A DNA stretch of 64,000 bases, taken from assembly GCF_001194135.2 (NCBI RefSeq), contig NC_068995.1:2887297-2951296 (forward strand), given 5' to 3'. This stretch comes from Octopus bimaculoides. Its lineage: Eukaryota. Below the pieces are notes generated by a model. The model made no database searches, had not been told where the DNA came from, and saw only the letters and a list, made by a program, of their open reading frames with translations. How positions within the stretch are numbered: position 1 is the stretch's first letter; each line of letters opens with the position of its first letter. Made by a program: the position numbers and the translations under genes. Below are positions 23,683 through 59,384 of this stretch, piece after piece.

Positions 23683-23973
23683 ATGGAAATCATAAAGAGT
23701 TCGTTGGGAGCAGATATGATCGTTTACAGAGAGTATATTTATAGAAAAGATAAAGCCAACTTGAATACCATGTACTGGCGATGTGTTAAATCGAAATGTA
23801 AAGGGAGATTGGTGAGCATTCTGGATTATAAAGAAAAGGACGTGGAAGAAATTCAACTGAAGGTCAGGGGTCACCATTTTCATCCTCCTGATCCTTTGGA
23901 TGTGAAGGCAAGGAAAGCATTAATTGAAGCGAAGTCAATTTTGAACTGCAACGAACTACCTAGAAACAAAAAG
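23683..23973 (+). CDS. Variable exon F1: FLYWCH zinc finger (MULE-derived), 97 codons, ends in a phase-0 donor
   Basis: ATG 23683 gives MEIIKSSLGADMIVYREYIYRKDK...YWRCVKSKCKGRL...HHFH, matching the FLYWCH pattern (W-x-C..C..H-x-H). Donor AAG|GTAATC at 23973/23974; 291 nt = 97 codons. The ORF-track tail beyond this is AT-rich intron-like sequence. Confidence 0.85.
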
Positions 23974-25559
23974 GTAATCATTATTCGATTTAACCATTGT
24001 TTTAATTTTTTTTTAGCAAAAAAAACAAAACTTTCGAAATATAATTACAGCTTCAAAATGATGTTTATTTATTTTGTCTTTATTTCCAAAACATTTTTTT
24101 TTATTTATAAAGTATATATTTAATAGCTGAGTATGTATATCTGATAGACACACTCTCAACTATCTATTTCTCTCTCTCTATTAGCCTGTCTGCCGGTCTA
24201 GTCGGGAGAAAGTTACAAAAGTGACTCTGGGGCCAACATTTTCGTCCAACCGACTTTGAATCTGAGTTTGTTTCTTTTTTATCGATCGAATCATATATAT
24301 ATTCTTTTGCTGTTGGTGGACTGCAGCCTTCCTATGGAACCTAGTGACTTCTATAGTTTGAAACCAAGTATATCGATCTGTATTTGTAGAACCGTTAGTT
24401 GGACAACACCGATTTGTTTTTAAAAACCCTTGTAAACATTAACTAACCAGGTACGCGCGCGCACACATCACACATATTTTCAATACTTTTTTTTTTTACA
24501 TATATGTCATCTGTTAAATTCCAGTCAACAACCTGAGGCTCATTATAGTTGAGTAGAGCCCCGTGTAAAATGTCGCGCAGTGAGATCGAACCTCAAATCT
24601 CAGTGCTGCAAAGCGAACTTTGTAACTAAACGGCCTAACGAATACGTGGAGTATATTATTTATCTTTTACTTGTTTCAGTCATTAGACTGCGGCCATGCT
24701 GGAGTACCGCCTTCAAGAATTTCTTGTCGACTCCAGTACTTATTCTATCGGTCATTTATGCCGAACAGTTAAGTTACGGGAACATTACCGGTTGTCAAGC
24801 GGCGTCGGGGGGTGGGTAGAGGACACACACAGAGCCAATCTTGCGGAGAAAGTTCATGAAAATGAAACTATTTGTTCGGTAATTTCCGACATACATGCAC
24901 AAAAAAACTCCCATACTTACATACGCTAAGAATACAATAACAAGCGGTTCAAGTGAAAACAAAAGTTAAAGAAATAAAATTTTTTACGGAAATTGCTGAA
25001 CAAACACTTTCACTTTTCATGGTCTTTCTCCAAAAGAATGCCATATATATACATATAGAGAGAGAGAAGAGCGGACATAACAAACAGAGAGAGAGATGAA
25101 ATTTACTTACCATATCTATCTATCTGCTTGTCTATCTCTCCATATCTCTGTCCGTCCGTCCATCCATCTATCTATCTATCTATCTATCACACAAGTGTGC
25201 TCTCTTCCCCGATTTTGTTTCCTTACAATTTTCTGAAAAAAATGGGTATTTTTAATGAAATACCATTCTGACTGCATAAATTATACGATTATATCGGAAT
25301 TTAATGTGAAAAAAAAAATGTTGGGCGCACACACGTACATACTGTTATACTTTTCATATACATTACAAAATAAAGCTTGATATTCTGAACACATTATGTG
25401 TGTTTTAGTATGTATGTGTGTACACCAACCTGTTTTGTTTTTTCATTATGATCGTAATCTATACACACGCACACATATGAAGTCTGTTTTTCGGCCATCG
25501 TCTCGTCACTTGTTGCGATTATTTCCTTTAGGAGGTTTCCCAATTTCTTGAAATCAGCG

Positions 25560-25730
25560 CTCTTCGTCCACTTTTCCCTTATATTTTCCCATGTCTCTTC
25601 CTATTTTGCAGGTTCCTTCCATTGGAATCACTTGCCAATTCTTTTACCCAGCTTTACCCCGTTCTATACACATCACATGTCAGAACCAGTGCAGTCTTCT
25701 CTCATGCACGTTACATCTGATTCCACGAGC
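25560..25730 (-). mobile_element. Degenerate RTE C-terminal fragment
   Basis: Minus strand reads GIRCNVHERRLHWF*HVM...EGTC. Confidence 0.7.
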
Positions 25731-25959
25731 CAACGCGGTAGCCTGTATATTAGTCACTCGACGCGCTAGAAACAGCAGCCAAATCTCTCTCAAATTAACA
25801 TCCTAAAAGATCGAACATCTTGATTATTGGAGTCTTGGGTTCCTTGCTTATAGGAAAAATACAGAATGGTCACGGTTGGAATGTCTTTGATCAATGGTTC
25901 AATCAGGGCCTACATGAGACTATATAAACAATATCAACATTCGATTCCTCTAATATTTA

Positions 25960-26450
25960 GTCTTTCCCTGACCCGTTATTCACCTTCTCTGTAATGTCAC
26001 CGTACAAGAAATACAGATATAATCGCATGTAACCCTTTCTCTCACAGATATCCTATCCATCAGAATAATCGAATTTGTTTCCACCTTAAATAATTCCAAT
26101 CTCGTGGAAACATGCCATATGTAGTAACAATATCTTTTCTTTCTGAAACGATTTGTTTTAATTCCTTTTGTTATTCAAGGTCTGCGATATCTGCTCCTGT
26201 ATCAGTTATTATTAAATCAACATCTTTATTAACAGAGTTTTAAATATCATTCAGAACAGATGGATTGACGTAGCTTCCTAAATGAGGAACAGCCTGATGA
26301 CCCCAAGAATGTCCTTTTTACATTCATTATAAATAAGAGAACATTTACGTGGTAAATATTCTTTTAAACCCATTTTAACGTTCTCGATTATTCTGCCAGT
26401 ATTTCCATTTGATTGTGGATGATATATAGAGGTGTTTTCGTAGGTCTACA
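25960..26450 (-). mobile_element. Degenerate LTR-retrotransposon (Gypsy-like) integrase fragment
   Basis: Minus strand reads TSIYHPQSNG..RIIENVKMGL, the integrase core motif; many stops follow. Confidence 0.75.
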
Positions 26451-26966
26451 CCCAGTTTTAACGAAGCCAGATGCTCGAGTTTATTATTTATGTAATTCAC
26501 AGACATTGTCAAGAAGTCCGCCAACTTATCGCCGCCAATTCAGTGCGGAGTCAAGTTATCGGTAAACTAACTCATCGCCTCAATTAACTTACTTTAAAAA
26601 TTGAAATTCATAGAAGTGAAATGGAATTGAAAAAAAAACCCTTTATTTAAAGAAATGGAATGTTAATTAAAATACCTTATTTTACTAAAGTGTATATGTT
26701 TAAATCAGTGGTTCGCTACTAATTCATCGCCGCCAATTCATCGCGAGCCAAGTCCTCGCTCACCAACTCATCACCGAACTACTTCAGTATCAAACCAAAT
26801 AATTACTAAGCAGACTAAATTAGCAAATTACAAGTCAGCTAATTATTAATTTAAATGTGACAGCGTTTACTTATTTACTGTTCGACGCTGGCAACTTCGG
26901 TTCATGCAATTAATTTAGAACTGTTTGAGCTACGATTGCTTAAATTTTTCAAGGAGGCCCTTCACA

Positions 26967-27275
26967 ATGGAACGTGTTTTCAGTCAGCGAGGCAAAGAGA
27001 AGTTCTCACACAATGGCTATTTGTTTATATTTGATAAATTTAGTAGGACCGACACTGACTTAATGTTTTGGCGTTGTGAATTAATCGGCAGATGCAAAGC
27101 AAGAATTCACACAAAATTTGGCGATGTTGTGAAATTTATGAATACTCACACACATGATTGTTCACCAATAAGGGAAGTAGTAAAAATGGTCAGAAAATTG
27201 AAAAGCTGCTCTCGAAAGTCACTGGAAGGTCCAAATATAGTAATTGACGAAACATTGGGCAGTGTTTTCCGACCG
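26967..27275 (+). CDS. Variable exon F2: FLYWCH zinc finger (MULE-derived), 103 codons, ends in a phase-0 donor
   Basis: MERVFSQRGKEKFSHNGYLFIFDK...FWRCELIGRCKARIHT...HTH. Donor CCG|GTAAGC at 27275/27276; 309 nt. Confidence 0.88.
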
Positions 27276-28203
27276 GTAAGCACTTCAAATAAGCATTTTT
27301 CCTTCTATATTTCTATGTATATAATAATAATTCTTTCTAATTTCGGCTCAAGGCCAGCAATTTTGAGGGAAAGAGAAAGTCAGTTATATCGATCCCAGCG
27401 TTAAGCTGGTACTTCATTTTATCGACCCGAAAGGCAAACGTTGATTTCGGCAGGATTTGAACTCAGAGCGTAGAGAGCCAGAAGAAATGCTGCTAAGTTC
27501 TTGTGTCGGATGCGCTAACAGTTCTGTCAGCTCACTGTCTTACTAATATTTTTTAATAGCAATTAAACATTTTGATGGAATAAATTAAATGCGTGGAAAT
27601 TGAACCGCTATGTTAAATTAAGGCACTGTGGCTCTCCGTTTTCATACACAAAATGCTCTAAGAATGTCCTTTCTGAATGAAATACAGTTCTTCCGTAGCT
27701 CCTTAACTCTTTCTCTTTCTTTATTCTTATTAATTCACCCACAGTATCAGTAGCGTAGCTTGGGGTAGAGCGAGCCGCCCCTGGGAAGAAACAATTTTTG
27801 GGTCTACTGTATAAACGCCTATATAGGCTCGTGAACCCGGGAGTAGGGGCTGGGTTCTTAAACTATAGGGCTTCCCCGGCGGCACATGCCACATCATTGC
27901 ATAGTATACGTCAACAAATATTAACAGTACTTCTAAATTCTTGACATAAACATGATCAATGGACGCATGTATCCATTCTTCATCATCATCATCACCATCA
28001 TTTAACGTCTGCTTTCCATGCTGGCATGGGTTGGACGGTTTGACAGGAGCTTGCAAGCCAGTGGATCGTGCTAGGTTTTACTATCTGCTTTGGCATGGCT
28101 TCTATGGCTGGGCGCCTTTCCTGATGCCAATCCCTTTACAGAATGTACTGGGTGCTTTTTACGTGACACTAGAATCAGCAGTAGCAAGGTCACCAGGTAA
28201 CTT

Positions 28204-28249
<46 letters not shown>

Positions 28250-28689
28250 AAAAGAAAAAACCTCAACTGAACAAGGGAGTAATATTGAGAGTACAAATGT
28301 CATGTTTTCAAAAGTTCTGAATTAAAATCTTCCACCAAACCTTAGTCTAATTGAAAGAAACACAGAGCATCTCAACAGAAATATGGTAACAGAAGGGTTA
28401 AAGATTTTCAACAGAAATGACAACATCACACTTCTAAAACAAAATATAGACTTGTAAACCTTCAATATTCTTGGTAGTTCGTCTGTCTTTATGTTCTGAG
28501 TTCAAATTCTGCCAAAGTTGACTTTGTCTTTCATCCTTTCGGGGGGAGGGGGTCGATAAATTAAGTACCACAAAACATCATAAAGAAGAATGAATAATTA
28601 TACATCTTCAAAAGTTATTTATTACAGCATTATCCCCATTTTGAGAATAATGCTGTCAAACCCATATTGGTATCAAAATCTATACCAGC

Positions 28690-28830
28690 CCCTGTTCCAA
28701 AGGTCCCAGCTATTCCGTCTAGATTCAAGGGCCCACAACTATTTAACACCTTGCTAAAACATCTGAGGGTTCTCTATGGACTAGGGGTAGATGTTTTCAA
28801 GAAACAACTTGAGCTCTTGCTATCCAAGCT
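28690..28830 (+). mobile_element. CR1/L2-type LINE RT C-terminal fragment
   Basis: GPQLFNTLLKHLRVLYGLGVDVFKKQLELLLS matches the C-terminal motif of CR1/L2-group ORF2. Confidence 0.7.
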
Positions 28831-29539
28831 TTGGATATTAACCTATATCAAGGCAGGAAACTCAAAAGAGGGCAGCAGTGTTGAACTCCCTCCTTCAGCA
28901 AATGCCAATCACATATAATTGACCATTGAAAGGGTGATTACACTGGCAGTGCTGCAGCATGGCCGCAACCACAGGGCTGAAATGTATAAAAGAATTCAAA
29001 GAATTTACTTCCAATCCAATACGCGTTTCTGCTGGATAAATGCCTTAATGTCTTTTGACGCAGTATTTAGGTGCATTTAGTTGGTTCAGCCGCAGTAAAT
29101 ATCCGTCCAAGGTAAACATTCCCATGTAGCTTTGTCCATGTTCAAAGAACATGGGTACAAACTGTTAACCTCCAATTTTATTTCTCTTTGACTTCCAAAA
29201 AAATTCTTTTTAATATTTGATAAGATGGATGCCATCGAAACCGGTTATATTTTAAATCACTCACTCTAACAAAAATATTAAACATTCTGTAAAATATATT
29301 TTTGTGCCTTTTCAAATTTTAGTTACTTTTTTAACCATAATTTTTGATTCGTATGTACTCTTAACTCCTTTTCAACTATATATATATATATATATAAATA
29401 TATATATATTGGGGGAGAGGGATTATCACCTAGATATCCAATTAAGTTATACAAGAAGGAATCATTCCTAATAACTGACATTGCAGTATCCTCATAAACA
29501 GCTATCAGGGCAAAGGAGATGTCTTAGAGTGAAGTAGCT

Positions 29540-29690
29540 ATTTAGGAATCAGATTATTGGATCCGATTATGAAGGTCATGGAGAAAGTTATGGCTCAATT
29601 GATTTGTGATAAGATTGACCAAGATGAGATATTGTATGGCTTCATATCCAGGAAAATACCACAGATGCAGTCTTCCTTATGAGGAGGCAA
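29540..29690 (+). mobile_element. Degenerate RTE RT fragment
   Basis: YLGIRLLDPIMKVMEKVMAQLI...YGF..(frameshift)TTDAVFLMR. Confidence 0.75.
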
Positions 29691-30422
29691 CAGGAGGTGA
29701 AATGTTTGGCTCAGAGTTGAGGGCCCGCTTTACGAGACCCTGGGTTTACGAGTTTTATTTTATTATAAATTTTTCAAACACAAGATCCAAATTTTGAACC
29801 AAGTGCAAAAAAAGTTTCTACCACCATAACAAATGCTTCTGCATGTTACTGAGAAATTTATTGAGAGCGAATAAAAGCTTCTTCTAATCAAACAACTCTA
29901 CACTTGTGTGTAAGTACAGGCAGAGGCATTTGGTTAACAAAATGGTTTCCTAACTCTAATCATGTAGTCTTGTGTGGCACCATGTGTTTTGTATAGCCCT
30001 GGGCCAACCAAAGCCTTGCAAATGGAAACTGAAAGAAACCCATTGTGTGTGTGTGTAGTAATGTAAGTGTTAAAAAGTATATTATTAAACTATGCTTTAC
30101 ATAGTGAAAACATTCTGATACGGAACTCAATGCAGTGATAGTTGTGTGCGGCCCAACCTGGAGCAAAACTCAGAGTAGATTATCAAATTCTGATATAATA
30201 AATACAGAGACACACACACACAACATTTGTGTATAATTATGGGTATGTGCGAGTATGTGCATATATGAGTGCAGTGGTGGGACCCTGCGCCATTAGAACT
30301 TGCAGGTGGGACCCTTTAGTCTCCTGGCAACCAATATTTTTAGACCCAGTCCGCCACTGTATGAGTGTATGTATATGTCTCTTCCTCTCTCTCTGTATAT
30401 ATATATATATATATATACCGGA

Positions 30423-30545
30423 GTAAGCACATGAAATGTGCAACAAGGTGGAAAAAAGAGTACTCAAATATCTTGTTCCAGGATAAGAAGGCGCTTAACC
30501 AAAGACGCGAACTTTTAAACACATGTAGGCATGCGTCCAAATTTA
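30423..30545 (+). mobile_element. Penelope-like element, GIY-YIG endonuclease C-terminal fragment
   Basis: LNQRRELLNTCRHASKF resembles the PLE LN.R.E....CRH..K motif. Confidence 0.65.
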
Positions 30546-31116
30546 AAATGTCTACATGTAATATTCCATATGGGTAAAATTTTGGACTATGATCGACTCC
30601 TTATAACCATTGTGCAATCTGACTATATATANNNNNNNNNNNNNNNNNNNNNNNNNNNNNNNNNNNNNNNNNNNNNNNNNNNNNNNNNNNNNNNNNNNNN
30701 NNNNNNNNNNNNNNNNNNNNNNNNNNNNNNNNNNNNNNNNNNNNNNNNNNNNNNNNNNNNNNNNNNNNNNNNNNNNTATATATAGGTTACTTGGAAAAGG
30801 ACGCGTGGCGTTCGGAGTACATAAAACAGGGGACAACTGATGAAGGGAATGTTCTTTATGCTGCATGTCTGTTTCTCTGTTTGTTTGTTGTTTTTGTTGT
30901 TTGAAAAAAAGTTCGTTTTCTATGCTTTTGTTTTTTATGTTCTCGTTTCTCATTCTGTCCACGTTTTTTTGATGTCCTGTACCCATATATGCATGTATGT
31001 ATACATATATATGTAGGTATGTACATATATGTATGTATATATTTATATATTATTTATATTATTATTATTATAATATACAGACGATACAAAGAAAACAAGG
31101 ATGTATCATGTGAATA

Positions 31117-31171
<55 letters not shown>

Positions 31172-31193
31172 TACTTGAAGATCATGGTGGTGG

Positions 31194-32046
31194 TGTCACT
31201 GATTTTTCCCAGTCGCATTTTCCCAGCCAACATTTCCTAGTCACATTTTCGTAGCCGACATTTCTCGATAGCAGTTTTCTCCCAGCAAGACTACTTTAGA
31301 CAATATTTTCCGTTTTTATTTGCAATAATTCTATGAAAATTATAATTAACACAAGTAATCAGTAAGGAAGAAGATTACATGACGGAAAATGTTTTTATTT
31401 TGTTATGTTTAATTAAGGCTGTAAATAAATTATTTTAACTGTAAAAAGGTTATCAAACAGTTAACATTACAATTTCTCTTTATAAATACGTCATAAGATT
31501 TAAGATTAATAGCGATAAAAATTATCAAGTTATAAAGTTTGATTCATTTAGTATTTGCTTCCAGGAATATTCGAGAAATATTCGTTTGCTATAATTGAGT
31601 ATTAACAAATTTTATGCTGGAATATGGATAACAACGTTTCATACATCGCAAGTATCAGAGGCAAGGAAAAAGCTTGCAACAATGGCTATGTTTATGGGTT
31701 TGACAAGAAAAGCAAGAAAGACGACCAGCTCTTCTTTTACCTCTGCGAGAGACAAAGATACGAGCAATGTCCATCGAGAATCCATGTAAAACATGACACG
31801 GTGGTGAAACGCATGCATCAACATAACCATGCTCCAAATCGATCAAGGAAAAAAACCTTGAAAATAGCTTCTGAGATCAAAGATCATGCGGCCACTTCCG
31901 CGGAACCGTTCATAAATACCATCATAGCAGACAGGACAACTCATATACCAGCCTCTGTTGCAGCAGCAGTAATTATACCAAATGTAGGTACTCTGTTTAC
32001 TTTGCCTGTTCATTCACACAGATACAAAATACTATATATATGTAAA

Positions 32047-32081
<35 letters not shown>

Positions 32082-32215
32082 ATGTAATGTCTTTTTGTTG
32101 ATATAGACACACGTACGCAGATGTGTTTATATACATACATGTACCTGTGCGGCTGTAATGGTCTGTCTTGGCTGGGATATCGATCGCTGGGAAAAGCGGC
32201 TGGGAAATGCGTTAC

Positions 32216-32216
<1 letters not shown>
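31194..32216. mobile_element. TIR-bounded MULE-like shell enclosing exon F3
   Basis: Left end TGTCACTGATTTTTCCCAGTCGCATTTTCCCAGCC; reverse complement of right end TGTAACGCATTTCCCAGCCGCTTTTCCCAGCG. No TSD recognised. Confidence 0.6.
31624..31983 (+). CDS. Variable exon F3: FLYWCH zinc finger (MULE-derived), 120 codons, ends in a phase-0 donor
   Basis: MDNNVSYIASIRGKEK..NGYVYGFDKK...FYLCERQRYEQCPSRIH...HNH. In-frame TAA at 31603 upstream of the ATG. Donor AAT|GTAGGT at 31983/31984; 360 nt. Confidence 0.85.
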
Positions 32217-32249
<33 letters not shown>

Positions 32250-32692
32250 CATTTTATATTGTCGAGAGATATTCTTGCTTTTGGCACAACCGGTCTATTT
32301 TTCTTTTAGAGTGTATCCTTGTTTTTCCTGACTTATAGACTAACTGATCACACACACACACAAAGATGTGTGTAATTTCATTTATGTACCTGGAAATTCT
32401 ACGAACAAATTCTGCTCATCGTATCAATGTTAATATGTATGTATGTATGTATGTATGTATGCGTGCGTGCGAGTGTGCATGTCTATACGAGTTCCTGTTT
32501 ATGTGTTCTTGTCTGTGAGTGCTTGTATCGATGTTACTGTGTATATATATTTAAGCGTCCAACCCATGCTAGCATGGAAAATGAACGTTAAACGATGAGG
32601 ATGATAAATGATTATATATATATATATATATATATAGACCTTTTGCGATGAAATCTCTTGCTATATTGGTAACGATTACATGTTTTTCTATG

Positions 32693-32735
<43 letters not shown>

Positions 32736-32760
32736 TTATTAATATTTCTANNNNNNNNNN

Positions 32761-32800
<40 letters not shown>

Positions 32801-33383
32801 TTATTAATATTTCTAAGTCTCTCTAAAGGGGATATTTAATAACTTTATTAATAGTGACTTCGAATGCCACATACAAGTGTGTGTATGTTTTTATATGACT
32901 AACATTTTGAGGTTACTTACAATACCAAAAAGCTTCCACAACCATGGTTCCAGGTTCATTTCTACTGCATGGCACCTTCATCAAGTGCCTTCCACTATGA
33001 TCCGAGGCAAACTAAATATTTGTGATTAGATTCGTGTGGGTCAGTCACAATTTGATGGGGCAGATTTTTTTTATGGCCAGATGCTCTTCCTTCTATCACT
33101 TCTCATCTGATTCAAAGCAGGTAATATTTCTTTTCTAGTTCAGACATGGTTGTAAATGGAAAATTGCAAACAAATGATACTGTTTGTATAATGGGATTGA
33201 ACCTGCAATCACTCGGTTGTGAAATGAAACACTTAACCATACAGCCATGACAGCACCTCTCTGTCTGTCTGTCTCTCTCTCTTACATACATACACACACG
33301 TTCTTTCTCTTTTCCTCCCTCATCTCTGTGTGTGTGTGTATGTTTCTGGAATCTGAGGAAATATTTCTTTCATATTTTTGCAG

Positions 33384-33482
33384 AATGCTAGCTACAGTAC
33401 CAGAAAGAAATTGAGCAAATCTCCAAGAGAAGAACCCATTTCTGATATGGATCCTTTCAGTTCTGAAGTTAGTAAAGTAAAG
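33384..33482 (+). CDS. Symmetric (0/0) micro-exon m1, NASYSTRKKLSKSPREEPISDMDPFSSEVSKVK
   Basis: Acceptor ttttcatatttttgcag|AAT, donor AAG|GTAAGC, 99 nt, open in phase 0; resembles m2. Confidence 0.7.
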
Positions 33483-33639
33483 GTAAGCAGTGTGTGTGTG
33501 TGTGTAGGGGTGCAATCGGTTGTTGTTGTGATACAGTGAGTTAAGAGAAATTTGGCTGCTCTTTTTAGCATACTGAATAACTATGTAGGGGTCTCCCTAT
33601 TGTCTTGTGTTATGACTGGTTGATAACAAGTTGGGGTAG

Positions 33640-37915: not shown

Positions 37916-39130
37916 ATGTCGGATGTAGCTGACTCAAAGCCATTATCGTCTTCACTCACGCAATCCTTTATGAATGACTTCAACGCTGATATTGTTAGCG
38001 GAACCAAAAGCGATAAAAATGTTCTGTTAGTTGCAGATGACCCTCCTCCTGCAATGAATTCTATAAACTTCATAAACCTAGACGAATGTAGCCAGCTGGC
38101 AGGTTCGAGGAACACTAAACGGGTCACCGCCAGTTCTGTTAAATTGTTTCGAGCCTTTTTAAAGGAGACCAATAATGGAAGGACTGATTTTGAAAATTTT
38201 GATGAAGAACTCCTTATCAGTCATTTGATAACTTTTTTTAAGCGGGTAAGAAAGCCAGATGGTGATCTGTATACGAAGAATGGTTTGCTGTCGATTCGTT
38301 TCGGACTAAGAAGGCGCTTGTTAGACTTACGTAAAGTCGATATTACTAAGCACCCTCGCCTTAATTCAGTTTTTACTGCTCAGATCAATAAATTGAAACG
38401 AGAAGGAAAAGGAGATATAAACCATTATCCTCCCATTAGTCAGGATGACATGTTCAAAATTTATAGTTCAGGGATTTTGTCACCCGACACGCCAAAAGGG
38501 TTGTTAAGGAAGATTTTCTTTGAGACTGAAATGTTTTTTTGTCGACGAAGTAGAGAAAACCTAAGGGATTTGAAAGGAAGTCACTTTAAAATTGAAACCG
38601 ACGATCAGGGCAAAATATATTTGACCACAGATTTTGATCCATCGTTTGGTGGTGGACCAATCAAACGGATTTATGAAACTGGCACAGACATATGTCCAGT
38701 GAAAGCCTTTCGGAAGTTTTTGCTGAAACGTCATTCTGGCTGTGAGGCGTTATTTCAACGTCCCGTGGATATAATTCCGTTTTCTGAACAGGATCCTTGG
38801 TTTTATTGTTCAGCTCTCGGCCTCAATAAACTCGCCAACATGATGAGAGAAATTTCTTCAGAAGCGTGCCTATCCAAGATATATACAAATCATTCCATAA
38901 GAGCTACCTCAAAATCGGTCTTTGATCTCGTCTGGAACGGACTCTTCTCGCAGAACTCACCGAATACAATAGCACCTGCCTCTAGTGATGTCAGCAATAT
39001 TAGTGACATAACTTCTGTTTCAATGGAGAAGCCAAAGCAACGATCATCATCATCTCAAGGAAATGAAACTGATATCGATTTGAAATCGAACTTAGACATA
39101 CAAGAAATTGAAAGGAAACACGTCCCTGTG
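37916..39130 (+). CDS. Variable exon Y1: Crypton-type tyrosine recombinase / DUF3504-like domain, 405 codons, ends in a phase-0 donor
   Basis: Uninterrupted ORF with Crypton-like motifs RKPDGDLY...IRFGLRR, FFCRRSRENLRDL, CPVKAFRKFL, LGLNKLANMMREIS and YTNHSIRATS. ATG 37916; donor GTG|GTGAGT at 39130/39131; 1215 nt. Confidence 0.88.
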
Positions 39131-40413: not shown

Positions 40414-41056
40414 NNNNNNNNNNNNNNNNNNNNNNNNNNNNNNNNNNNNNNNNNNNNNNNNNNNNNNNNNNNNNNNNNNNNNNNNNNNNNNNNNNNNNNN
40501 NNNNNNNNNNNNNNNNNNNNNNNNNNNNNNNNNNNNNNNNNNNNNNNNNNNNNNNNNNNNNNNNNNNNNNNNNNNNNNNNNNNNNNNNNNNNNNNNNNNN
40601 NNNNNNNNNNNNNNNNNNNNNNNNNNNNNNNNNNNNNNNNNNNNNNNNNNNNNNNNNNNNNNNNNNNNNNNNNNNNNNNNNNNNNNNNNNNNNNNNNNNN
40701 NNNNNNNNNNNNNNNNNNNNNNNNNNNNNNNNNNNNNNNNNNNNNNNNNNNNNNNNNNNNNNNNNNNNNNNNNNNNNNNNNNNNNNNNNNNNNNNNNNNN
40801 NNNNNNNNNNNNNNNNNNNNNNNNNNNNNNNNNNNNNNNNNNNNNNNNNNNNNNNNNNNNNNNNNNNNNNNNNNNNNNNNNNNNNNNNNNNNNNNNNNNN
40901 NNNNNNNNNNNNNNNNNNNNNNNNNNNNNNNNNNNNNNNNNNNNNNNNNNNNNNNNNNNNNNNNNNNNNNNNNNNNNNNNNNNNNNNNNNNNNNNNNNNN
41001 NNNNNNNNNNNNNNNNNNNNNNNNNNNNNNNNNNNNNNNNNNNNNNNNNNNNNNNN
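40414..41056. other. Assembly gap (other gaps: 14291-14416, 30632-30776, 32751-32760)
   Basis: Runs of N. Confidence 1.
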
Positions 41057-45400: not shown

Positions 45401-45984
45401 AGGAATGAGTAGGGGGGAAGGGTGAGGTGGAAAAGCTTTTGGTTTAGTAGAAAGAATAAGAATAATAAAAGAGAGAGGGCGAAGCAATAAAGCTAGAAAG
45501 AGTTGTGTGTGAAGTAGGTTTGCTGTTGGTAGTTAGGCAGCTGCTGTCTGCTTGCTTGTTCTACTTTCCTCTCGAAACCAACCTACCACCATCAGCAGCC
45601 TGCTGTTTGTTGTTGTTTACAGTTAAACTGCTTGTCGATATAACAACCCTGTTGTTAGGCTTACTCAGAGAGGGGCGGCAGTCAGTTGTTGGTGGCTAGC
45701 TACACTCAGTACACATCGATTTACTGCAGTCTGACCTAAATCGACCATCACACAGAACGGTAAACAACGCACCACAAGCTCGAGAACATTCGCTGAACGC
45801 AGTTTAATACACATGTACTCAAGTTGTGATTTGGTTAGAATATCTCAGCGCCCAGCTTTTCTTCTACTGCTCATATAAAACCAAGTGATATTGTGTCTAA
45901 TGTCTCATGTCTGCTGTTATTTGAACAGTTTTTCTGATAGTCGTGGTTTAGCAGTTTTTTTTTTCACTTCTCTCCTCTGCACAG

Positions 45985-46195: not shown

Positions 46196-47362
46196 ATGGC
46201 CGACCCTCCGTTCGTTGGAGACCTCAACACATCTGCTGTAGACGGTGGTTTGTACCTCACAACAGCGTTGAACAACGAAGAATTTGAAGGTTTATTAACG
46301 AAAGACTCCAAGTCCAGTCAACAGGCTGAGAAATACGCGGTGTTGAAATTCCGTCACTATCTGACCAAGCGAGGTGAACCATTGTCTTTGGAAAATTTGT
46401 CCTACCATGTGACCAGTGGTGACATGCCTGCCAAGGAGCGACTTCTTACCTACCTGACCACCTTCTTTAACGATCTCAGACGGACTGACGGCAGTAAATA
46501 TAAATTCAATGCCCTTAGAAGTATTCGTTACGCCTTAAATCGCTTTACTTTGAAGTTTGGAGTTGATTTTCTCAACGATGCTTATTTGAAAAAACCATTA
46601 AATGATGCATGGGTGGCGTTAGGCGAATGCCTGAAGCTGGAAGGGAAAGCTGATGTCCAGCATCACGATATTTTATCGTTGGAAGAAGTTAAGAAAGCAT
46701 ATGCCTGGTGTAATCAAAATCTTTCTGATCCTGATCGACTCCAAAAGAGAGTTTTTATGGATATTTACCTCTACTTTGGACGTCAGTGCCGACAGAATTT
46801 ACCACACCTGACCAAAGATAATTTCGGCATGGACGTCGATGCTAACAACCAGCGTTATGTTTACTTTATCGATAAAGCCGGCGACACAACCCGTAAAAGT
46901 AACACCCAGCTAGTGATGAAAGAACGTGTAGGATTTGTTAATTGTCCCGTAAAGATGTTCCTAAAATATGTTTCCAAATTAGACCCACATTATCCGCGAT
47001 TCTTCTGTCATCAAAAGCTAAATGTTGACCCGCCCTATCACACAGTTTGGTATACAAAACAGCCGATGGGTGAGAAGAGAATGGCCGAGTTTATGAAATC
47101 CATTTCGAACGACGCCGGTTTGTCTAAAGTTTACACAAACCATTGTTTGCGTTCCACACTGCTGTATCTAATGGAAGAAGGTGGGTTGGATGCTAAGGAT
47201 GTCAGTCGAATAACCTGTAGTCAAGCACCTCACGAAGGATCCATACCCGAGGTCCCTTCACCAGCACAACGTCCCTTACAAACACCACATGTCGCCACTA
47301 CAAACACGTGGTCCTCACATTCTGGCACTTCACTTCACTCTCGGAATAAAAAATCATCTCAG
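46196..47362 (+). CDS. Variable exon Y2: Crypton-type tyrosine recombinase / DUF3504-like domain, 389 codons, ends in a phase-0 donor
   Basis: Motifs RRTDGSKYKFNALRSIRYALNR, YFGRQCRQNL, CPVKMFLKYVSKL, WYTKQPMGEKRMAEFMKSIS and YTNHCLRST. Start context CCAAAATGGCCG; donor CAG|GTAAGT at 47362/47363; 1167 nt. Confidence 0.88.
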
Positions 47363-51900: not shown

Positions 51901-54900
51901 CAAGTTGTCATTGTGAGGAGAAAGAGAGAGGGTCTATGCTGTGGATTGTGTTTTATTATAGGGTGGGATTTGTGTAGAATATGGGTTATGCGAGTTATAG
52001 ATGATGATGATGATGATGGTGGTGGTTGAGAGACATGTTAGAGTATTGGGTGTTGCTTATGTAAGAATCCGTGTTGTATTATTCCAGTTGGGTGGTGATT
52101 GGGTAGACTTTGTGCTGTGTGTTGTATTATTGGGTGGTGCTTCTGTAGATTATGTGTTATGTGACTGGTATCATGGTGGAGTGGTGGGTGGGAACTGTGT
52201 AGGGTATGTGCTGTTGAACCATGATGATTGGTATGATTGGTGGTGAGCTGGAAGAATTGTTAGCAGGCCGGGCGAAATGCTTAGCTGTATTTTGTCTGTC
52301 TTCACATTCTGAGTTCAAATGCCGCCAGGATTGACTCCTTTTGAGGTCGATGAAATAAGTACCAGTTATGCACTGGAGTTGATGTAATCGATGATCCTCC
52401 TCCCCTAAATTTCAGGTCTTGTTTCTATAGTAGGAATGATTTTTATTTTAATGATTGGCAGAATCGTTAGCATGCCAGGTGAAATGCTTAGCGGTATTTC
52501 ACCTGTGGCTACATTCTGAGTTCAAATTCCGCTGAGGTCAACTTTACCTTTCATCCTTTCGGGGGTCGATAAATTAAGTACCAGTTAAACACTAGGGTCA
52601 ATGTAATCAACTAGCCCCTTTCCCCTCAAAATTTTCAAGGCCTTGTACTTAGAGTAGAAATAATTATTATGATTTAATAAAGTGGTAAGCTTGCAGAATC
52701 GTTTTATATATATATGTGTGTGTGCTGGTGTCATGTAAAAAGCACCTAGTACACTCCGTAAAGTAATTGGCTGTAAGAGGGGCATCCAGCCATAGGAACC
52801 ATGCCAAAGCAAACAATTGGAGCCTAGTGCAGCCCTCCAGCCATGCCAGCTCCTGTCAAACTGTCCAATCCATGCCAGCATGGAAAACGGACATTAAATG
52901 ATGATAATGTGTGTCTCCTTGTTTTGACATCATGTGATGGTTGTAAACGGGCATCTCTGTTCTGCAAGTGGTGACCTTTGTTTCCAGTCCAAAGTGAAAA
53001 CCTATCTGACCATGGAGGAAATATTACCTTGCTTGGAAACAGTTGAGGGCTCCAAAACAGAAAGTTTGCCTCAAGCAGCAATTCTATTCAGCCATGTAAG
53101 CATGGAACAGTAATCGTTAAAACAATTCTGATGAGGATGATAATGGTAACTTTTCAAGTTCAAACCCAACTTTACTTTTTTTCTCATGGAAGTCGATAGA
53201 TTTGTCTAACCAGTGGTATACTGGAGTGGGTCAGTTCTGTTAATTTTTTTTTTATCCAACTCCACTGTGGTATTGTGTCTCAATTAAACACCATGACTGT
53301 TGTTGTTGTTGTTGTTGTTAGTATAGCGATGGTGGTGGAACTCTGCTGTGTGTGAAAACTATTGAACCAGTTTGCTTTCAGATAACAATAAATAATAATA
53401 ATAGAGCAACATATTCCAATTGTCACTGCACACCCCAGAAGCTATTTATAGGTCAATGAACTGAGATATTTGTTGTTAGTTGTCAAGAGGGTGGACTGGT
53501 CTTCTTCATATGTTTTCATACATTCAGTCTTGTCTGTTTTCTGTCAAGTAAACTCAGCAAACAACAGCCACCAGTGATAGCTTTAGAAGGACTTGTAAAG
53601 AGGTGGAGGGGTGGTTGGGAAGAAGTAAGACTTGTGAGGGTGGTAGTTGGAGGTAGAGCTGTGAGGTAGTAGAGCACCACACTCCATGCTTTTACATGGT
53701 TTGTTTGAGCTTTCTACATTTGCCTCAGTTGATTTAACCTTAAAATACCATAACTTAATTGTTGTTCAGTCCCAGGTCATTCCTGATGGAGCAGACTTGT
53801 GATCGAAGGCATGTGACCATCCCTGTCTTTTCTTGTGTACAGGAAAGCCAGAACCACATTATCCAATGTATATTCTTTCTTAAGATGGCAAGGTGTGATT
53901 TGATGGACTTTGGCTGCTATTTCTAGCAGATTGAACAACTCCCCCAAATGGTTGGAATAAGTACCAGTAATATATCATGGCCATTGACTAACTAAACCAA
54001 CAATGATTTCAAATATTGGTACAATGCCAGGAATTTATAGAGGTGACCAAAAGTCTTTGAGAGAAATTTTGCAAGATGGAATGAAGTTCCTTTTGGGTCC
54101 CACCTTGTCAGAAAGTTTTTCTTGGGTCTCTGGCCCCACCCTCAGTCCTATGTAACAACTGGACCTCTCTTCTCATAGACCTTGCAGAAAGCATATGAGT
54201 TTCTTGAATTGATACTTACGTTCTTGACCCCAAGAGGGGATGAAAAGCAAAGCTGTCCTAGAATTGAACTAAGAATACTTACCCTTCAGCATTTAAAGTG
54301 GCCACATCCGGCCCAGGTATTCTATGTATTTTATGATCTGGCTTTTCACACATACCCTTCCATGTCGTCCCCAAAATAAACAATGACATCATTGAAATCT
54401 CAAAACAAGATAATGCACAATTAATTCAAAACAATGGGAATAGACAAGCATTATATTTGACCGAATAATTTGAATGCTGTCAACCCTTTAGCATTTAAAC
54501 CAGCTACAGCAGGTTGAAATATTCTACCTGATTAAATGTTTATACCAACTAGATCTGACCTCTCAGACCTACCCTACAGTGTCATTGTAAAAATAAACAA
54601 TCACATTATCAAAAGCTTAAATCTACAAAATAATACATGATTAATTGAAGAAAATGTGGATAGATAAGCATTACGTTTAAGAGAATAATCAGTATACAAA
54701 AGGGTTAAAGGTTGATTATCAGTTCTTTTATCATTTTCATCATTCCACCATCCCAAGAAAAGGATTTAAGGCTTAGACTTAAGTCTGTTACAAACTCCAG
54801 GACTCATAAGGCTGGAGCTTGACCCTGTTTCCATTGCAGTAGAGATTACAACACAACAGCACCCCCACCCTACAAGATAGGATGCCAGTTCCTCACAAGG

Positions 54901-56828
54901 TTAACTTCCCAACTGAGTGGATTGGAGCAACATGAAATGAAGTGGCTTGCTCAAGGATACAATGCATTGCCTGGTCTAGGTATTGAAACCAGTATCTTCT
55001 GGTTGAGAGCGCAGCACTCTAACCACTAAGCTATGTGGCTTGAGGAAAACCTTACAAAACTATCTCAATTAAAAGAAGCCCAAGCTTCTTTTGATACCAT
55101 TCTACCCGGAGCCACCCATGGTTCTGTGTCACAAACTTCTTTAAAAATTATCTAAAAAAAAACTCCCATCAGAATGTCCCGTTAATTTATGTTCCAGACA
55201 TCAGATTTATAACTACAAAGTTATTTTACTGAGTTGTCTATTATTTTAAAAATAAATCAAAACAAAGCAATGAATTTCAACAGAAATATGGGGACATAAG
55301 GGTTAAGGGGATCCATCAAAATTTCATGTTTCTTTATGTCCCAAACACTTACTTAATAATAATAATGAAGTTATTTAAAAAATAAATTGAAACAAAGCAT
55401 TGTATTTCAAAAGAAATACAAATGCCTCGTTTTTTGCTTTGTTGTAACAAAAGGGCTTCTGTAGTTTGAAGTGGTTGGCCTGTCATCAAATATTTCCTTC
55501 TCTTCACTAACAACAACAAAAAAGAGTTAAAATGGAAATTCTTTACAAAATCTCTAATAAATATTCATTCTTCTGCTTCGGATGTGACTGAATTGCTTTT
55601 TTAATTTTGGGAGTAAAATTGAATATTTTAATATTGTTGGATTTTTATAATTGCTATTATCTACCTAGTGTCCCACATGTTTTACAAATCTGCCACATGT
55701 GTTGTAATGATTCCAAACGTAAAAAAATACTTCATTGTTTTGTAAACATCACACTGTTTTATAGACCTGCCACATATGTTGAGAATTACAAAACATGTGG
55801 CTCTCAACTGGTTTACAAATCTGCCACATGTCATACCATCCCACATGTTTATAATTACCACACTTGTTTTATAACTATACTACATGTTTTATAACCATCC
55901 CCATCATATGTTTTGACTATTCTCAAATGCATAGCTATTCCACATCTCATAAATACTCCACATGTTAAAAGTTACTCTACATGTTTTATTATTCTGTATC
56001 CATTGTACTTCCATCCTATCTTATATAACAACCGCACATTTATGATTACTCCCCCAAAATTATCAAAGTTTATCCTACAGTGTTCATTAGATAGATCACA
56101 TGGTTCACTTATTAGTTTACATAATTTCCTACATGTGTAATTCATGAACAGCTTACACAGTTCACTGCACACTTTTCAGCTAAAAATAGTAGGTTTTGAC
56201 TTCTACACCAAGACAATGTTGGAGGACCAAAAATTCCATGTGAAATGCAGCAGAATATGGAAAGATAGAGACAATGTTTGAGTGTTTTGTTTGAATGTTT
56301 ACAATATCTATTATGTCAATTTGTTTGCTGAAAAATGCAGTAATTATCTTAGTTTATTGTTAATGAGGTGATTGAAAGTAGTTAGCTTATTTTGCTGTAA
56401 ATATAATTTATAGGGTAAAAAGCATTGGGGCTGCTTCCATGTAATAATCACTGGTACTGTTAGAGCTCTGGTACTGGTGCCATATAAAGAGCTCTGGTAC
56501 TGGTGTCATGTAGAAAGCACTGGTGTTGGTGCCACATAAAAAGCACTGTGCTACTACCCTGTAAAATGCTCTGGTGATGGTGTCATGTAAAAAGCACCCA
56601 GTACACTCTGTAGAGTATTTGGCAGGGCATCCAGCTGTAGAAACATTGCCAACCCCTGTTGAGCCATCCAACCCATGCTGGCATGGAAAAACAGATGTTA
56701 AATGATGATGATGATGATTTATATGGTAACGTCTAGTTTTCATTGTCGAATCACTATGAGCATAGTCCATGGTGACCAATGCATGTACAATGTCAAGGTT
56801 ATCTAATGGTATTTGTTTAATTTTCCAG

Positions 56829-57130
56829 GAGGAGAACAACTGTGAACTGTACCCCAGTGTTAACAATGTAGGTAATACATACTCACTAAACTCGTTCAAT
56901 GGTAACGTTCAGGTAGAGAAACAAGCAGCAGAGAAAGACATTGTGGAAACAGCGGCAGTGAACCCTATGGAGTTCAAGCTGAGGCAGTCGGAATTTATGG
57001 AAGCTCAGAAGCAACAGGCTGAATTCATAGAAGCCCAGAAGCAACAGGCTGAGTTTATGGAAGCTCAAAAGCAACAGGCTGAATTTATGGAAGCCCAGAA
57101 GCAACAGGCTGAGAAATTAGCCGAGGAAAG
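56829..57130 (+). CDS. Constant exon C1: phase-0 acceptor, coiled-coil-like (EFMEAQKQQA)x4, phase-2 donor
   Basis: Acceptor tttaattttccag|GAG GAG; donor AAG|GTTGGT at 57130/57131; 302 nt. The phase matches the acceptor of C2. Repeat variants are mostly synonymous. Confidence 0.8.
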
Positions 57131-57833
57131 GTTGGTAATAAATCTTGCTATTTAAGTGTGAGATTTGTTGTTAGTTCAATATTTGATTTAAATTTTGAAG
57201 AATTCAGTCTTATGCTAAGACTTAGGAAAACTTTTGAAAGGTTTTTCAGAGTATTCCAAATATGATTCATTGTTTTCGTGGTTTAATTTTGATTTATTTT
57301 CTTGCATTTACTATTCCTGTCACCAACCTTTATTTACTCTTTGTCCAGAAAGGGTTTCCTTTTGTTTTTTTTCTTTTGGATTCAAGAGGAATTGAAATGT
57401 GTAGAGCTAGCAGATGATTTGTTGACAAAAAATATCAACAAATGTCACCTTCTGCTGCCACAGCCACTAATGGTTGCATCACCAGCAGCCCAACTCGTAA
57501 ATAGTGATGCTATCATTTGTAGCTGAGCTGAAAAACGGTTACGTCACTGTTTACAGCTGTAGCTCTGCATAGACTGTGAACAGTCACACACAGAGTAAAG
57601 AATGTGTGTACAAATAGATGTATGTCTGCTATTGTTATATATAGAGCTCCACATAAATTATCATAATCTAGGCTGCTTCCTAATGCAATACTGTGTTCCT
57701 TGATGATCCTTTGTGGTTGAGCATCTAAATGCTCTCTGAACACCTACAGCTGAGTTCCAAACAATGATAGTGGTGAAACGTGTGTAGGAACTTTAATAAT
57801 ATAAACTTGAGTTTATCCTTATTTCTCTTATAG

Positions 57834-57867
<34 letters not shown>

Positions 57868-58744
57868 GGAGTAAATGGAGCAAGAACACACGAAAATGAA
57901 AAGTGTTGCTGAAGAGGTCACAGATGTGTGACAAAAGATTTCTGGACAATGGACATGAGTTAAAATAATAAAATAAGAACAGTAATAAACGAGTGGAGGT
58001 AAAATATATAGTGCGTGTGCTTATTAGGCAAAAAAAAAAAAAAACACGACCATCCCAAAATACAACAAGATATATATTAGTGTTACACCACTAATATATT
58101 TAAGCAATGTGTTTGTGAATTGTTGATCAGTTGGATGTGATACTGATGGACGAGCAATACTTCCTGAAATATGCATATACACCCATTACCTGTTTTCTCT
58201 GTCTTTGATTGCATTGTTTATACAGACATATTTGTGGCACGAAATGCTGTCAATTTCAGTGCTGGCTCTGAACTCTATAGAAAATCCATAGAGGTAAACT
58301 TATATATATATATATTTGTGTATGTTTTGAATGTGAAACAATGTGTATATGTTAATAATATACACACTGTCTGACAGCTGACAGAATGTTCATTGATGGA
58401 TGTAAAAACACTGCAGTTGGTGACAGTTAAAAGAATGGAACGATTGAAATATAGTGTCAGTTATTAGAGTTGGATTTGCTGTTGTTTTGTTTTAACCTGG
58501 TGTTTGCTGTCAGCTCTGGTCAGCCTGACCAAACATCACACAGGATCCAACTGTGACCATTATTCAATGTGTCCTTTTGTTATTTTTTTATTCTTTTTCT
58601 TGTTTCAGTTGTTGGGCTGTGGCCATGCTGTGGCACTGCCTTGAAGAGTTTATTCAAACGAATTAACTTCTAGTACTTATTTCTGTGTCTTCTACTTACT
58701 TGTGAAGGTGCATGGCTTCTACTGACAAGTGAAACCACAAGGCA

Positions 58745-58995
58745 CAGGTGGTTAGAGTGTTGGGCTCACAATCACAAGGTTGTGAGTTCGATTCCTGGAC
58801 TGAGATGTGCGTGTTGTGTTCTTAAGCAAGACACTTTATTTCACGTTGCTCCGGTTCACTCAGCTGTAGAAATGTGTTGCGACATCACTGGTGCCAAGCT
58901 GCATCAGCCTTTGCCTTTCCCTCGGATAACATCAGTGGCATGGAGAGGGGGTGCTGGTACGCAAGGGCGACTGCTGGTCTTCCATAAATAACCTT
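58745..58995 (+). mobile_element. tRNA-derived SINE family C. Related copies: about 35860-36120-, 54790-55040-, 63085-63425-
   Basis: GGTTAGAGTGTTGGGCTCACAATCACAAGGTTGTGAGTTCGATTCC tRNA-like head followed by a SINE body. Confidence 0.7.
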
Positions 58996-59242
58996 ACCTG
59001 GACTTGTGTCTTGGAATTGCTCCCCTTCCAAAAGCACCATCTACTTCACACATTCAGCACTTCTTATGCCACTGTTGTCATCCCTATGCACCACATGGCC
59101 ACACCGGATTTCTCTTTCTACACAGTTTTCCTTTCAAGGCCTTACTAATGTGTTGTTGAAGGATACAAATCTTATGTTTCCAGCCTTTTATGTTTGCTTT
59201 CTTTTCTTTCTTTTTGTAAACATGTTTATATTTTTTTTGTAG

Positions 59243-59384
59243 GCAACAAAGACAGAACGAAAGCAAAGTATATAAATATATGGTTTTGAATCACGAGAAG
59301 AAAATTCTGGAAACTCTTCGAACGCTTTGGAAAGGAAACCAGTTCTGTGATGCGATGTTGCAAAATGAATGTGTGTCTATTCCA
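59243..59384 (+). CDS. Constant exon C2: N-terminal part of a BTB/POZ domain (not in the ORF track)
   Basis: Acceptor ttttttttgtag|G (phase 2), then QQRQNESKVYKYMVLNHEKKILETLRTLWKGNQFCDAMLQNECVSIP, then donor CCA|GTAAGT (phase 0). L..L...FCD..L......P is the classic start of a BTB fold. The rest of the domain was not found in the window. Confidence 0.8.

Follow-up and report, generated by a model that had tools for sequence, protein, structure and literature searches.

A probable array of transposon-derived head exons upstream of one constant helix-BTB region in the Octopus bimaculoides gene LOC106879774

The 64,000 nucleotides of Octopus bimaculoides DNA analyzed here (contig NC_068995.1, G000:C15:2887297-2951296 of the 2.34-Gb genome assembly; hereafter the window) hold all but the last coding exon of LOC106879774, a gene annotated in RefSeq as an "uncharacterized protein" with 7 predicted isoforms and extending over ~46 kb from its first head to the stop codon. 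By heads we mean five single-exon open reading frames (ORFs), three with a FLYWCH domain (F1-F3) and two derived from Crypton tyrosine recombinases (C1 and C2), which precede a constant region composed of a charged helix, a BTB/POZ domain and a C-terminal tail (Table 1). An earlier inspection of the same letters (the original prediction) had proposed that these five plus-strand frames, each opening at an ATG and closing at a codon boundary in a GT donor, are alternative first exons of one gene, and had named the acceptor and donor of the first constant exon and the acceptor of the BTB exon together with their phases; all of these positions proved exact, and all five donors are used by RefSeq isoforms.

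Table 1. Exons and isoforms of LOC106879774 and related features. Positions are those of the window unless a contig or locus is given (C15, the window's contig; L018, the O. sinensis locus); a slash in a sequence marks a splice site.
Feature	Position	Strand	Details
Tentative X7 first coding exon	14755..14763	+	ATG AGG CAG/GT, 'MRQ'; upstream of all heads; pattern match only
Head F1, FLYWCH first coding exon	23683..23973	+	PF04500 E 1.7e-9, 38.1 bits; donor AAG/GTAATC, phase 0
Head F2, FLYWCH first coding exon	26967..27275	+	PF04500 E 4e-13, 49.8 bits; donor CCG/GTAAGC
Head F3, FLYWCH first coding exon	31624..31983	+	PF04500 E 1.4e-11, 44.8 bits; donor AAT/GTAGGT
X6 short head-less first coding exon	33055..33120	+	M(GQIFFM)ARCSSFYHFSSDSKQ; donor CAG/GTAATA
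Linker L1	33384..33482	+	NASYSTRKK...SKVK; both boundaries in phase 0; included in the F-head isoforms, X6 and X7
Linker L2	34057..34173	+	QYSRFNRRKK...TEFK; phase 0 at both ends; donor AAG/GTAAGC
Head C1, Crypton tyrosine-recombinase-derived (DUF3504-like) first coding exon	37916..39130	+	donor GTG/GTGAGT
Head C2, second Crypton-derived first coding exon	46196..47362	+	donor CAG/GTAAGT
Constant exon K, charged, helix-forming	56829..57130	+	phase-0 acceptor ttttccag/GAG; phase-2 donor
Constant exon B, start of BTB/POZ	59243..59384	+	…KVYKYMVLNHEKKILETLRTLWKGNQFCDAMLQNECVSIP; phase-2 acceptor, phase-0 donor
Last exon, BTB remainder and stop	G000:C15:2955874-2956947	+	VHKILLIACCPKIL...; phase-0 acceptor, AATAAA after; ~9.2 kb downstream, outside the window
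Isoform X5 (XP_052829115)	F1, L1, L2, K, B, last exon	+	
Isoform X4 (XP_014784960)	F2, then X5 path from L1	+	
Isoform X3 (XP_014784959)	F3, then X5 path from L1	+	
Isoform X1 (XP_014784956)	C1, K directly	+	
Isoform X2 (XP_014784958)	C2, K directly	+	
Isoform X6	short head-less exon, L1	+	
Isoform X7 (XP_014784962)	'MRQ', L1	+	MRQ/NASY...; head-less
Sixth head of O. sinensis (LOC115220336 isoform X5)	L018:20153-20449		spliced to L1; anchors at window 32548 and 32852
Paralogous array LOC106877732	G000:C3:137301439-137477464	+	isoforms, 18 or more; heads, 10 or more, each a single exon; one constant charged-repeat/BTB region
Order within LOC106877732		+	CENP-B, FLYWCH, THAP, Crypton, Crypton, shared linker exon, Tc1-like HTH, CENP-B, Crypton, zinc finger, constant region

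Spliced through the predicted junctions, the product is 100% identical to an O. bimaculoides RefSeq protein and contains Pfam BTB and FLYWCH domains; the same search also retrieved LOC115220336, the O. sinensis/vulgaris ortholog, and one cuttlefish protein. The junctions of the RefSeq proteins (XP_014784956-62 and XP_052829115) and of the O. sinensis ortholog are identical letter for letter to those predicted, and donors that had been picked by eye are in this way matched independently. The claim that all five heads are joined to the acceptor of exon K holds for C1 and C2, which reach it directly, but not for F1-F3, which pass through the linkers L1 and L2 first, and the end of L2, which had been listed as an alternative donor, is the true end of this FLYWCH-head path. 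The O. sinensis gene models have the same exon set and the same junctions, and among the predicted isoforms of both species none carries two heads or an N-terminal extension of a head. In the models all exons of LOC106879774 lie on one strand and no acceptor is in use on any head. In gene models of two species and at two loci, each head brings its own ATG and 5' splice site, is joined to common constant exons and appears alone in its product, which is the pattern of a variable-first-exon array. The proposal of one gene with alternative transposon-derived 5' exons on a single coiled-coil/BTB region is therefore supported by the independent gene models of two species. The isoform structure is publicly annotated, hence not strictly a discovery, and the original prediction's statement that it knew of no description has to be narrowed: a RefSeq annotation with 7 isoforms exists, while no paper mentioning LOC106879774 or describing such arrays was found in the searchable literature.

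All three FLYWCH frames score above the curated gathering cut-off of PF04500 (23.6 bits), as had been expected from their sequence. The C...C...H.H zinc ligands and the [WY]-x-C core are kept in F1-F3 of both O. bimaculoides and O. sinensis and in two Argonauta orthologs. The linker-exon region that follows these heads is predicted to be disordered (AlphaFold). For the head-less isoform X7, the exon at 14755 is the sole match in the window to the 'MRQ' pattern, an estimated ~0.18 such matches being expected by chance on the strand, and it was not confirmed in O. sinensis.

Three assembly gaps (30632-30776, 32751-32760, and 40414-41056) fall among these exons; all are intronic and none interrupts a reading frame. 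A fourth, at 14291-14416, lies ~340 nt upstream of the tentative X7 exon. The locus is colinear end to end with the gap-free O. sinensis locus (L018), which has just 381 bases between the anchors flanking the first gap and, at the third (643 N), ~4 kb of additional sequence that holds no noteworthy ORF. At the 10-N gap 32751-32760, O. sinensis has ~2.3 kb more, including a sixth head exon. To judge from its sequence, this head looks like the N-terminal CENP-B/Tc5-type helix-turn-helix (HTH) of a pogo transposase, with a donor cutting inside the second HTH; its match to CENP-B_N is weak (17.7 bits vs. a cut-off of 21.2). Neither the window nor the whole O. bimaculoides assembly yielded a copy of it, and since its position in O. 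sinensis corresponds to the gap, O. bimaculoides either lacks this head or has it concealed within the 10 N.

The two long heads are homologous (E 4e-40) to Crypton-like proteins carrying both PF12012 (DUF3504) and PF00589 (Phage_integrase), and a profile built from C1 and C2 matches human QRICH1 (E 3e-5), its only significant sequence match in the PDB. The AlphaFold 2 (AF2) model of C2, whose core has a predicted local distance difference test (pLDDT) score mostly >80, adopts a two-domain tyrosine-recombinase fold. In a Foldseek search against the PDB it was matched with probability 1.0 to QRICH1 (E 3.5e-6), Cre/Tre (3e-5), XerH, XerA, XerD, lambda Int and IntI, at template modelling scores (TM-scores) of just ~0.3-0.45, QRICH1 being the best fold match. 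The Arg-I region and the HxxR motif, including its second arginine, are kept (RRSRENL/HSIRAT and RQCRQNL/HCLRST), while downstream of HxxR the aligned C1 and C2 sequences of three species, among them Octopus and Argonauta, contain not one tyrosine; the relatives P0030 and P0031 retain it (HCLRST...SGHQNEASINSY). Because no tyrosine follows HxxR, although the Arg-I region and HxxR persist, C1 and C2 are catalytically dead recombinase folds that lost their nucleophile. Vertebrate DUF3504 genes are likewise catalytically dead recombinase folds, and have in addition lost the second arginine of HxxR (Kojima and Jurka, 2011; PMC3212892), which the octopus heads, unlike them, keep. The DUF3504 domains of QRICH1 and ZMYM proteins belong to the Zincore complex (PDB 9hjt; Bianchi et al., 2025, as cited in PMC13538652), and the title of the PDB entry describes QRICH1 as bound to a zinc-finger factor on DNA. 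Since QRICH1 was deposited in such a complex, the Crypton heads may bind partner proteins rather than DNA itself; they share with QRICH1, which is used in transcription regulation, a catalytically dead recombinase fold.

Some 400-750 nt 5' of the C2 ATG (~45450-45800) lie ~300 nt essentially identical to O. sinensis, one 50-nt window being at 96%, against a background of ~6% mismatches and 19 indels per kb between the two Octopus species. This block could serve the C2 head as promoter or enhancer, or belong to its 5' untranslated region (UTR).

The constant region opens with exon K, which includes 4.1 copies of a 30-nt repeat (EFMEAQKQQA) at 56991-57112. Four copies are present here and in current RefSeq, three in older models (P0027 and P0022) and six in the Argonauta model, a difference that could reflect polymorphism or an assembly effect. 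In the AF2 model, a single 62-residue helix runs into the beta-1 strand of the BTB domain, and beta-1 and the BTB core have pLDDT values of 60-86. On the spliced isoforms the domain scores 43-44 bits with PF00651 (cut-off 20.5), the only BTB type reported by Pfam, with no T1/KCTD-type (BTB_2) match. A C-terminal tail of ~260-270 residues is predicted to be disordered (AlphaFold), and Pfam reports no BACK or Kelch domain after the BTB. Two tail motifs, IKLEPEVD and YPVGL, are kept across the whole family to which the gene belongs; the first is similar to a psi-K-x-E sumoylation site with acidic residues after it.

Searched for in the genome, C1, C2 and F2 are each present in one copy at 100%, with next-best matches of 38, 41, and 51%, respectively (that of F2 is 51% over a shorter stretch and 47% over nearly its full length); F1 and F3 were not searched separately. 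The many near-identical copies that active transposons would leave were not seen for these three, and the view of the heads as active transposons was rejected on copy number. The original prediction had suggested that orthologs be compared and that the ratio of nonsynonymous to synonymous substitution rates (dN/dS) be computed for each exon, and every head proved to be under constraint or to conserve its frame. Against O. sinensis, at dS values of ~0.1-0.18, the ratio is 0.18 for C1, 0.06 for C2, 0.045 for K, 0.05 for B and 0.11 for the last exon, whereas the FLYWCH heads, with few sites, give 0.71 (F1), 0.54 (F2), and 0.37 (F3). Indels complete the picture for the short heads: from the 19 events per kb of colinear non-coding DNA, 5.6 would be expected in F1 and 5.9 in F2, and none is found in either (P ~0.004 and ~0.003), while F3 differs by a single codon. 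Selection on F1 is visible by frame conservation alone. The donors are identical or consensus in the two species, while the in-frame read-through tails beyond them differ in length and sequence, and the sequence after the donors therefore behaves like intron.

A compact locus in Argonauta hians (L019) extends the comparison. There the orthologs of F2 and F3 come before C1 and C2, with the coil and the BTB after these, and all four heads end in phase-0 GTAAG or GTGAG donors (GTAAGC in F2, GTAAGT in F3); the F3 ortholog is 65% identical in its core, and a likely counterpart of L1 (...CSRKKLTKVPRKR...VKVK/gtaaga) was recognized from a weak match (E 0.042) and a reading by eye. Between Octopus and Argonauta, dN is 0.25 and 0.22 in the F2 and F3 cores, 0.21 in C1 and 0.075 in C2; dN/dS is 0.19 for the F2 core, 0.10 for C1 and 0.03 for C2, at a dS that is saturated, which precluded a ratio for the F3 core. 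Genomic contigs of a third octopus carry both Crypton heads intact, with dN/dS of 0.25 (C1) and 0.09 (C2). Single copy, with the frame kept and catalysis lost, the heads have the signature of domesticated genes, and the locus displays what is known from host-transposase fusions: a transposase-derived domain in its own exon, a host domain, purifying selection and isoforms lacking the head (X6 and X7).

Taken together, we consider it very probable that LOC106879774 is one gene with an array of single-exon transposon-derived heads joined to a constant helix-BTB-tail part. Several observations weigh against this reading. The isoforms are Gnomon predictions, and Logan contigs of isoform clusters, tried as transcripts, were rejected: they are genomic DNA of the third octopus, colinear over exons and introns at ~88% identity. 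The Crypton assignment of the original prediction stands on homology and fold, but the Pfam scores of the heads remain below cut-off, both for DUF3504 (PF12012; 23.9 bits for C1 and 26.0 for C2 vs. 29.7) and for PF00589 (16.4 vs. 27.1 bits). The ratios of F1 and F2 rest on 13-20 substitutions and alone do not reject neutrality, and the 10 kb of flank available in Argonauta yielded no F1. To these are added two sets of observations, on possible acceptors and on the nearest BTB structures, that are weighed below with the alternatives that they favor.

That the isoforms are known from gene models and not from reads invites the explanation that the fused isoforms are artefacts of annotation, the FLYWCH and Crypton frames being small independent genes or remnants of transposons. 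An older UniRef model (P0026) indeed reads C1 through its donor to a stop, and the Argonauta annotation treats the upstream FLYWCH exon as a gene of its own, of 149 residues, and merges C1 and C2 in one 1387-residue protein (L019:10001-15816). This merge is made through a 'caag/ATG' junction that has no pyrimidine tract, and Octopus has no AG there; as head-to-head splicing it was rejected, and both Argonauta models are probably annotation artefacts themselves. The explanation would also have to accommodate identical junctions in two separately annotated species, donors that are conserved while the sequence beyond them is not, heads that are constrained and, where searched, single-copy, a paralogous locus with 18 isoforms of the same design, and mRNA-like contigs that fuse DUF3504 and BTB in a paralog. 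We regard it as highly improbable.

How an array of this kind could be read is suggested by the order of its exons. In the mechanism that we favor, a head exon would offer a donor and no acceptor in use, so that a transcript starting at a head would splice to the next acceptor downstream: F1-F3, upstream of the linkers, would pick up L1 and L2 and then K, whereas C1 and C2, downstream of them, would go straight to K. Donor-only first exons would thus explain both why the FLYWCH heads come with the linkers and the Crypton heads without them and why no isoform has two heads, and this linker position rule holds at LOC106879774 as well as at a second locus, LOC106877732. Each head would presumably have a promoter of its own, following the logic of the variable first exons of clustered protocadherins and UGT1A. 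The products would share a helix and a BTB able to dimerize and differ in a head that targets nucleic acid or chromatin, and would probably be nuclear regulators pairing with themselves or with each other.

The same isoforms could also arise if the heads were mutually exclusive internal second exons, selected by splicing behind a shared promoter and a non-coding first exon. Here belong further points against donor-only first exons, namely the candidate X7 exon, which lies upstream of the whole array, and pyrimidine-rich tracts with YAG, candidate acceptors located 150-400 nt 5' of F1, F3, C1, and C2; moreover, 5' UTRs are not revealed by protein models. The acceptor scan is weak, since the true acceptors of the gene score no better than the candidates, and it found no candidate in front of F2 or the X6 exon. 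Upstream of the head ATGs everything is conserved between the two Octopus species, ~6% diverged. Against a shared promoter speak also the opening of each head with its own ATG at the domain start, the lack of any predicted isoform with two heads or an N-terminal extension, and the linker position rule, which is a prediction of donor-only first exons and is observed at two loci. A shared promoter thus appears unlikely to us, and separate starts remain the preferred reading.

A different question is what the products do. With the gene structure unchanged, the BTB could recruit Cullin-3 and the heads could be interchangeable targeting or substrate-recognition modules of an E3 ubiquitin ligase. 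The nearest solved BTBs by phmmer, the Cul3 adaptors gigaxonin, KLHL3, KLHL26, and KBTBD2 (E 8e-9, about 1e-8, to 1e-6), rank ahead of ZBTB17, BACH1, and ZBTB7A, which counts against nuclear regulators of the kind proposed above. On the other hand, the BACK and Kelch domains are missing according to Pfam and the tail is predicted to be disordered, the heads are classical DNA-binding modules (FLYWCH here; THAP and CENP-B elsewhere in the family), and the IKLEPE-type motif of the tail would, from its letters, resemble a sumoylation site. Judged as a whole, the ligase explanation has a modest chance, even if the sequence by itself would leave a ubiquitin-ligase role as open as a transcription-factor role.

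The array of LOC106879774 is not unique, the gene being a smaller member of a cephalopod gene family. A HMMER scan with its BTB recovered 280 relatives, the ~25 closest of which share 33-38% identity and nearly all have the BTB in mid-protein, after a long N-terminal region. Pfam detected a head in 13 of the 20 relatives scanned, among them THAP, FLYWCH, DUF3504, CENP-B_N with HTH_Tnp_Tc5, FAR1/ZSWIM3_N (these last two below the Pfam cut-off), CG-1, STPR and THAP with a DDE_3 transposase core. All named relatives with the head-then-BTB layout are from Octopus, Argonauta or cuttlefish, including a cuttlefish model with a Crypton-like piece before the same coil and BTB; the first non-cephalopod match is a bivalve protein with an ordinary N-terminal BTB. 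The O. bimaculoides genome holds ~20 BTB paralogs, and each stand-alone Crypton-like ORF in it has one of them 4-15 kb downstream on the same strand.

Among the paralogs, LOC106877732, on another chromosome, repeats the design on a larger scale, with heads of at least six kinds spread over 176 kb ahead of a constant region of charged repeat, BTB and tail (Table 1; its Tc1-like HTH and zinc finger were identified by eye and have no Pfam match). The identical C-terminal stretch shared by its isoforms is 596 residues long where the head precedes the linker exon and 534 where the head follows it. Further family genes adjoin this locus, and more BTB paralogs are found at C3:135.37-135.49 Mb on the minus strand. 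In a tree of Crypton heads, C2 groups with one head of LOC106877732 (support 100/99) and another head of that locus groups with decapodiform proteins, while C1 and C2 do not fall together; with C1 and C2 apart, and kinship crossing between loci, the multi-head state, or the capture from distinct Crypton lineages, is therefore old. A decapodiform paralog is represented, in ~104 sequencing samples, by a single 927-residue ORF of DUF3504 and BTB on ~4-kb contigs, with ~0.7 kb and 0.45 kb flanking the ORF, and these contigs look like mRNA.

Among known systems, clustered protocadherins and UGT1A come closest in architecture, with same-strand exons in tandem that each bring a start codon and a 5' splice site and are spliced to a common constant part; their variable exons are mutual paralogs produced by tandem duplication. 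As in those clusters, a head of LOC106879774 takes the next acceptor, and its position sets which shared exons are included. Unlike them, the octopus heads are unrelated folds from different transposon superfamilies, the heads within the locus are not each other's closest kin in the Crypton tree, and a promoter for each head is in octopus only presumed.

In mod(mdg4) and lola the constant BTB is N-terminal and is followed by variable C-terminal exons, which are partly trans-spliced. One constant BTB is there combined with many alternative DNA-binding modules, FLYWCH included, the isoforms could mix through the BTB, and that BTB is of the arthropod-specific TTK type (PMC11426971). The octopus gene differs in having N-terminal heads with a BTB that is C-terminal to them and not of the TTK type, the reversed polarity that the original prediction had pointed out, and in adding Crypton and pogo head classes; its exons are on one strand throughout, and trans-splicing need not be invoked.

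The closest single precedent is KCTD1b, in which a Crypton lying 5' of a BTB gene supplied, as one exon, an alternative 5' variant where a DUF3504 that has lost the catalytic tyrosine precedes the BTB; two alternative DUF3504 exons are found in KIAA1958 (Kojima and Jurka, 2011; PMC3212892). This parallel, too, had been drawn in the original prediction, and it holds as a likeness of Crypton-BTB fusions but not as homology, the octopus BTB being of the PF00651 type and not of the T1/KCTD type. Because the BTB types differ, the octopus fusion arose independently of KCTD1, a case of convergence, and the gene was rejected as a KCTD1 ortholog, its nearest relatives being cephalopod paralogs and KLHL/ZBTB-type BTBs. 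KCTD1b is moreover a single capture, compared with several heads of several kinds, in a gene family, in octopus.

More generally, the capture by splicing of a transposase DNA-binding domain, which occupies its own exon and is alternatively spliced to a host domain, is documented in tetrapods, where the fusions are under purifying selection, usually result from one capture per gene and mostly involve KRAB or SCAN partners (Cosby et al., bioRxiv 10.1101/2020.05.07.082677); the term 'BTB' is absent from the text of that preprint. As in transposase capture, head-less octopus isoforms (X6 and X7) coexist with the fusions, whereas the captures, unlike those of tetrapods, are repeated: they accumulate into an array within a single BTB gene, and do so across the cephalopod family to which it belongs.

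For Octopus itself, the available part of the study of Mukherjee and Moroz (2023; PMC10027918) which deals with CENPB, THAP and HTH-Psq 'transposon-derived transcription factors', reports that most CENPB and THAP proteins carry a BTB/POZ domain, treats them as separate proteins and calls the BTB itself transposon-derived. These CENPB/THAP-BTB proteins are very probably members of the same family. Arrays, alternative head exons, Crypton heads and LOC106879774 are not described in that part of the paper, and the accessions of LOC106879774 are absent from its supplementary files.

The ingredients of the locus are therefore known ones (transposase capture by splicing, a Crypton relic before a BTB, a variable-first-exon cluster), while their combination, one gene with several unrelated transposon-derived and interchangeable 5' heads, appears undescribed in the searchable literature. 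The design recurs in a family of about twenty BTB paralogs and such arrays are more general than the original prediction had supposed; some of the octopus 'CENPB' and 'THAP' transcription factors tallied in the literature may thus be isoforms of a few loci. If the isoforms are real and dimerize, they would constitute a combinatorial regulator system similar to mod(mdg4), of independent origin and reversed polarity, bearing on the diversification of transcription control in cephalopods, which are rich in transposons and lineage-specific regulators, and on how repeated transposase capture is organized at one locus. A broader idea, which we advance tentatively and which may well prove too broad, is that coleoid BTB genes act as capture platforms, whose upstream regions gather the DNA-binding domains of many superfamilies (Crypton, Mutator/FLYWCH, P-element/THAP, pogo/CENP-B, Tc1-like HTH, and others) as donor-only first exons and so yield combinatorial, fast-evolving dimerizing regulators. 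Given this descent of the heads from transposase DNA-binding domains, such platforms might, as a lineage-specific device, recognize and silence transposons, or wire genes through transposon-derived sites; in function they would then parallel the KRAB zinc-finger proteins of vertebrates while resting on a different principle.

Other ORFs surround the array. In the last intron, a LINE-like (long interspersed nuclear element) endonuclease ORF with a weak Exo_endo_phos match extends on the plus strand from 63643-63999 into the adjoining sequence (L002:1-3310), where it runs into ~3.3 kb of N. Between the tentative X7 exon and F1, the minus strand carries an intact 95-residue THAP ORF (15483-15767; 27.7 bits vs. 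a cut-off of 23.9); downstream, the minus strand showed no BTB paralog, and THAP is a common head type in the cephalopod BTB family. A further minus-strand ORF, at 9058-9633, encodes 192 residues including a Cys-rich motif and has no Pfam match; it shares 34% identity (E 3e-19) with the head at the N-terminus of P0050, an Argonauta member of the BTB family, and may be another head type or the source transposon of such a head.

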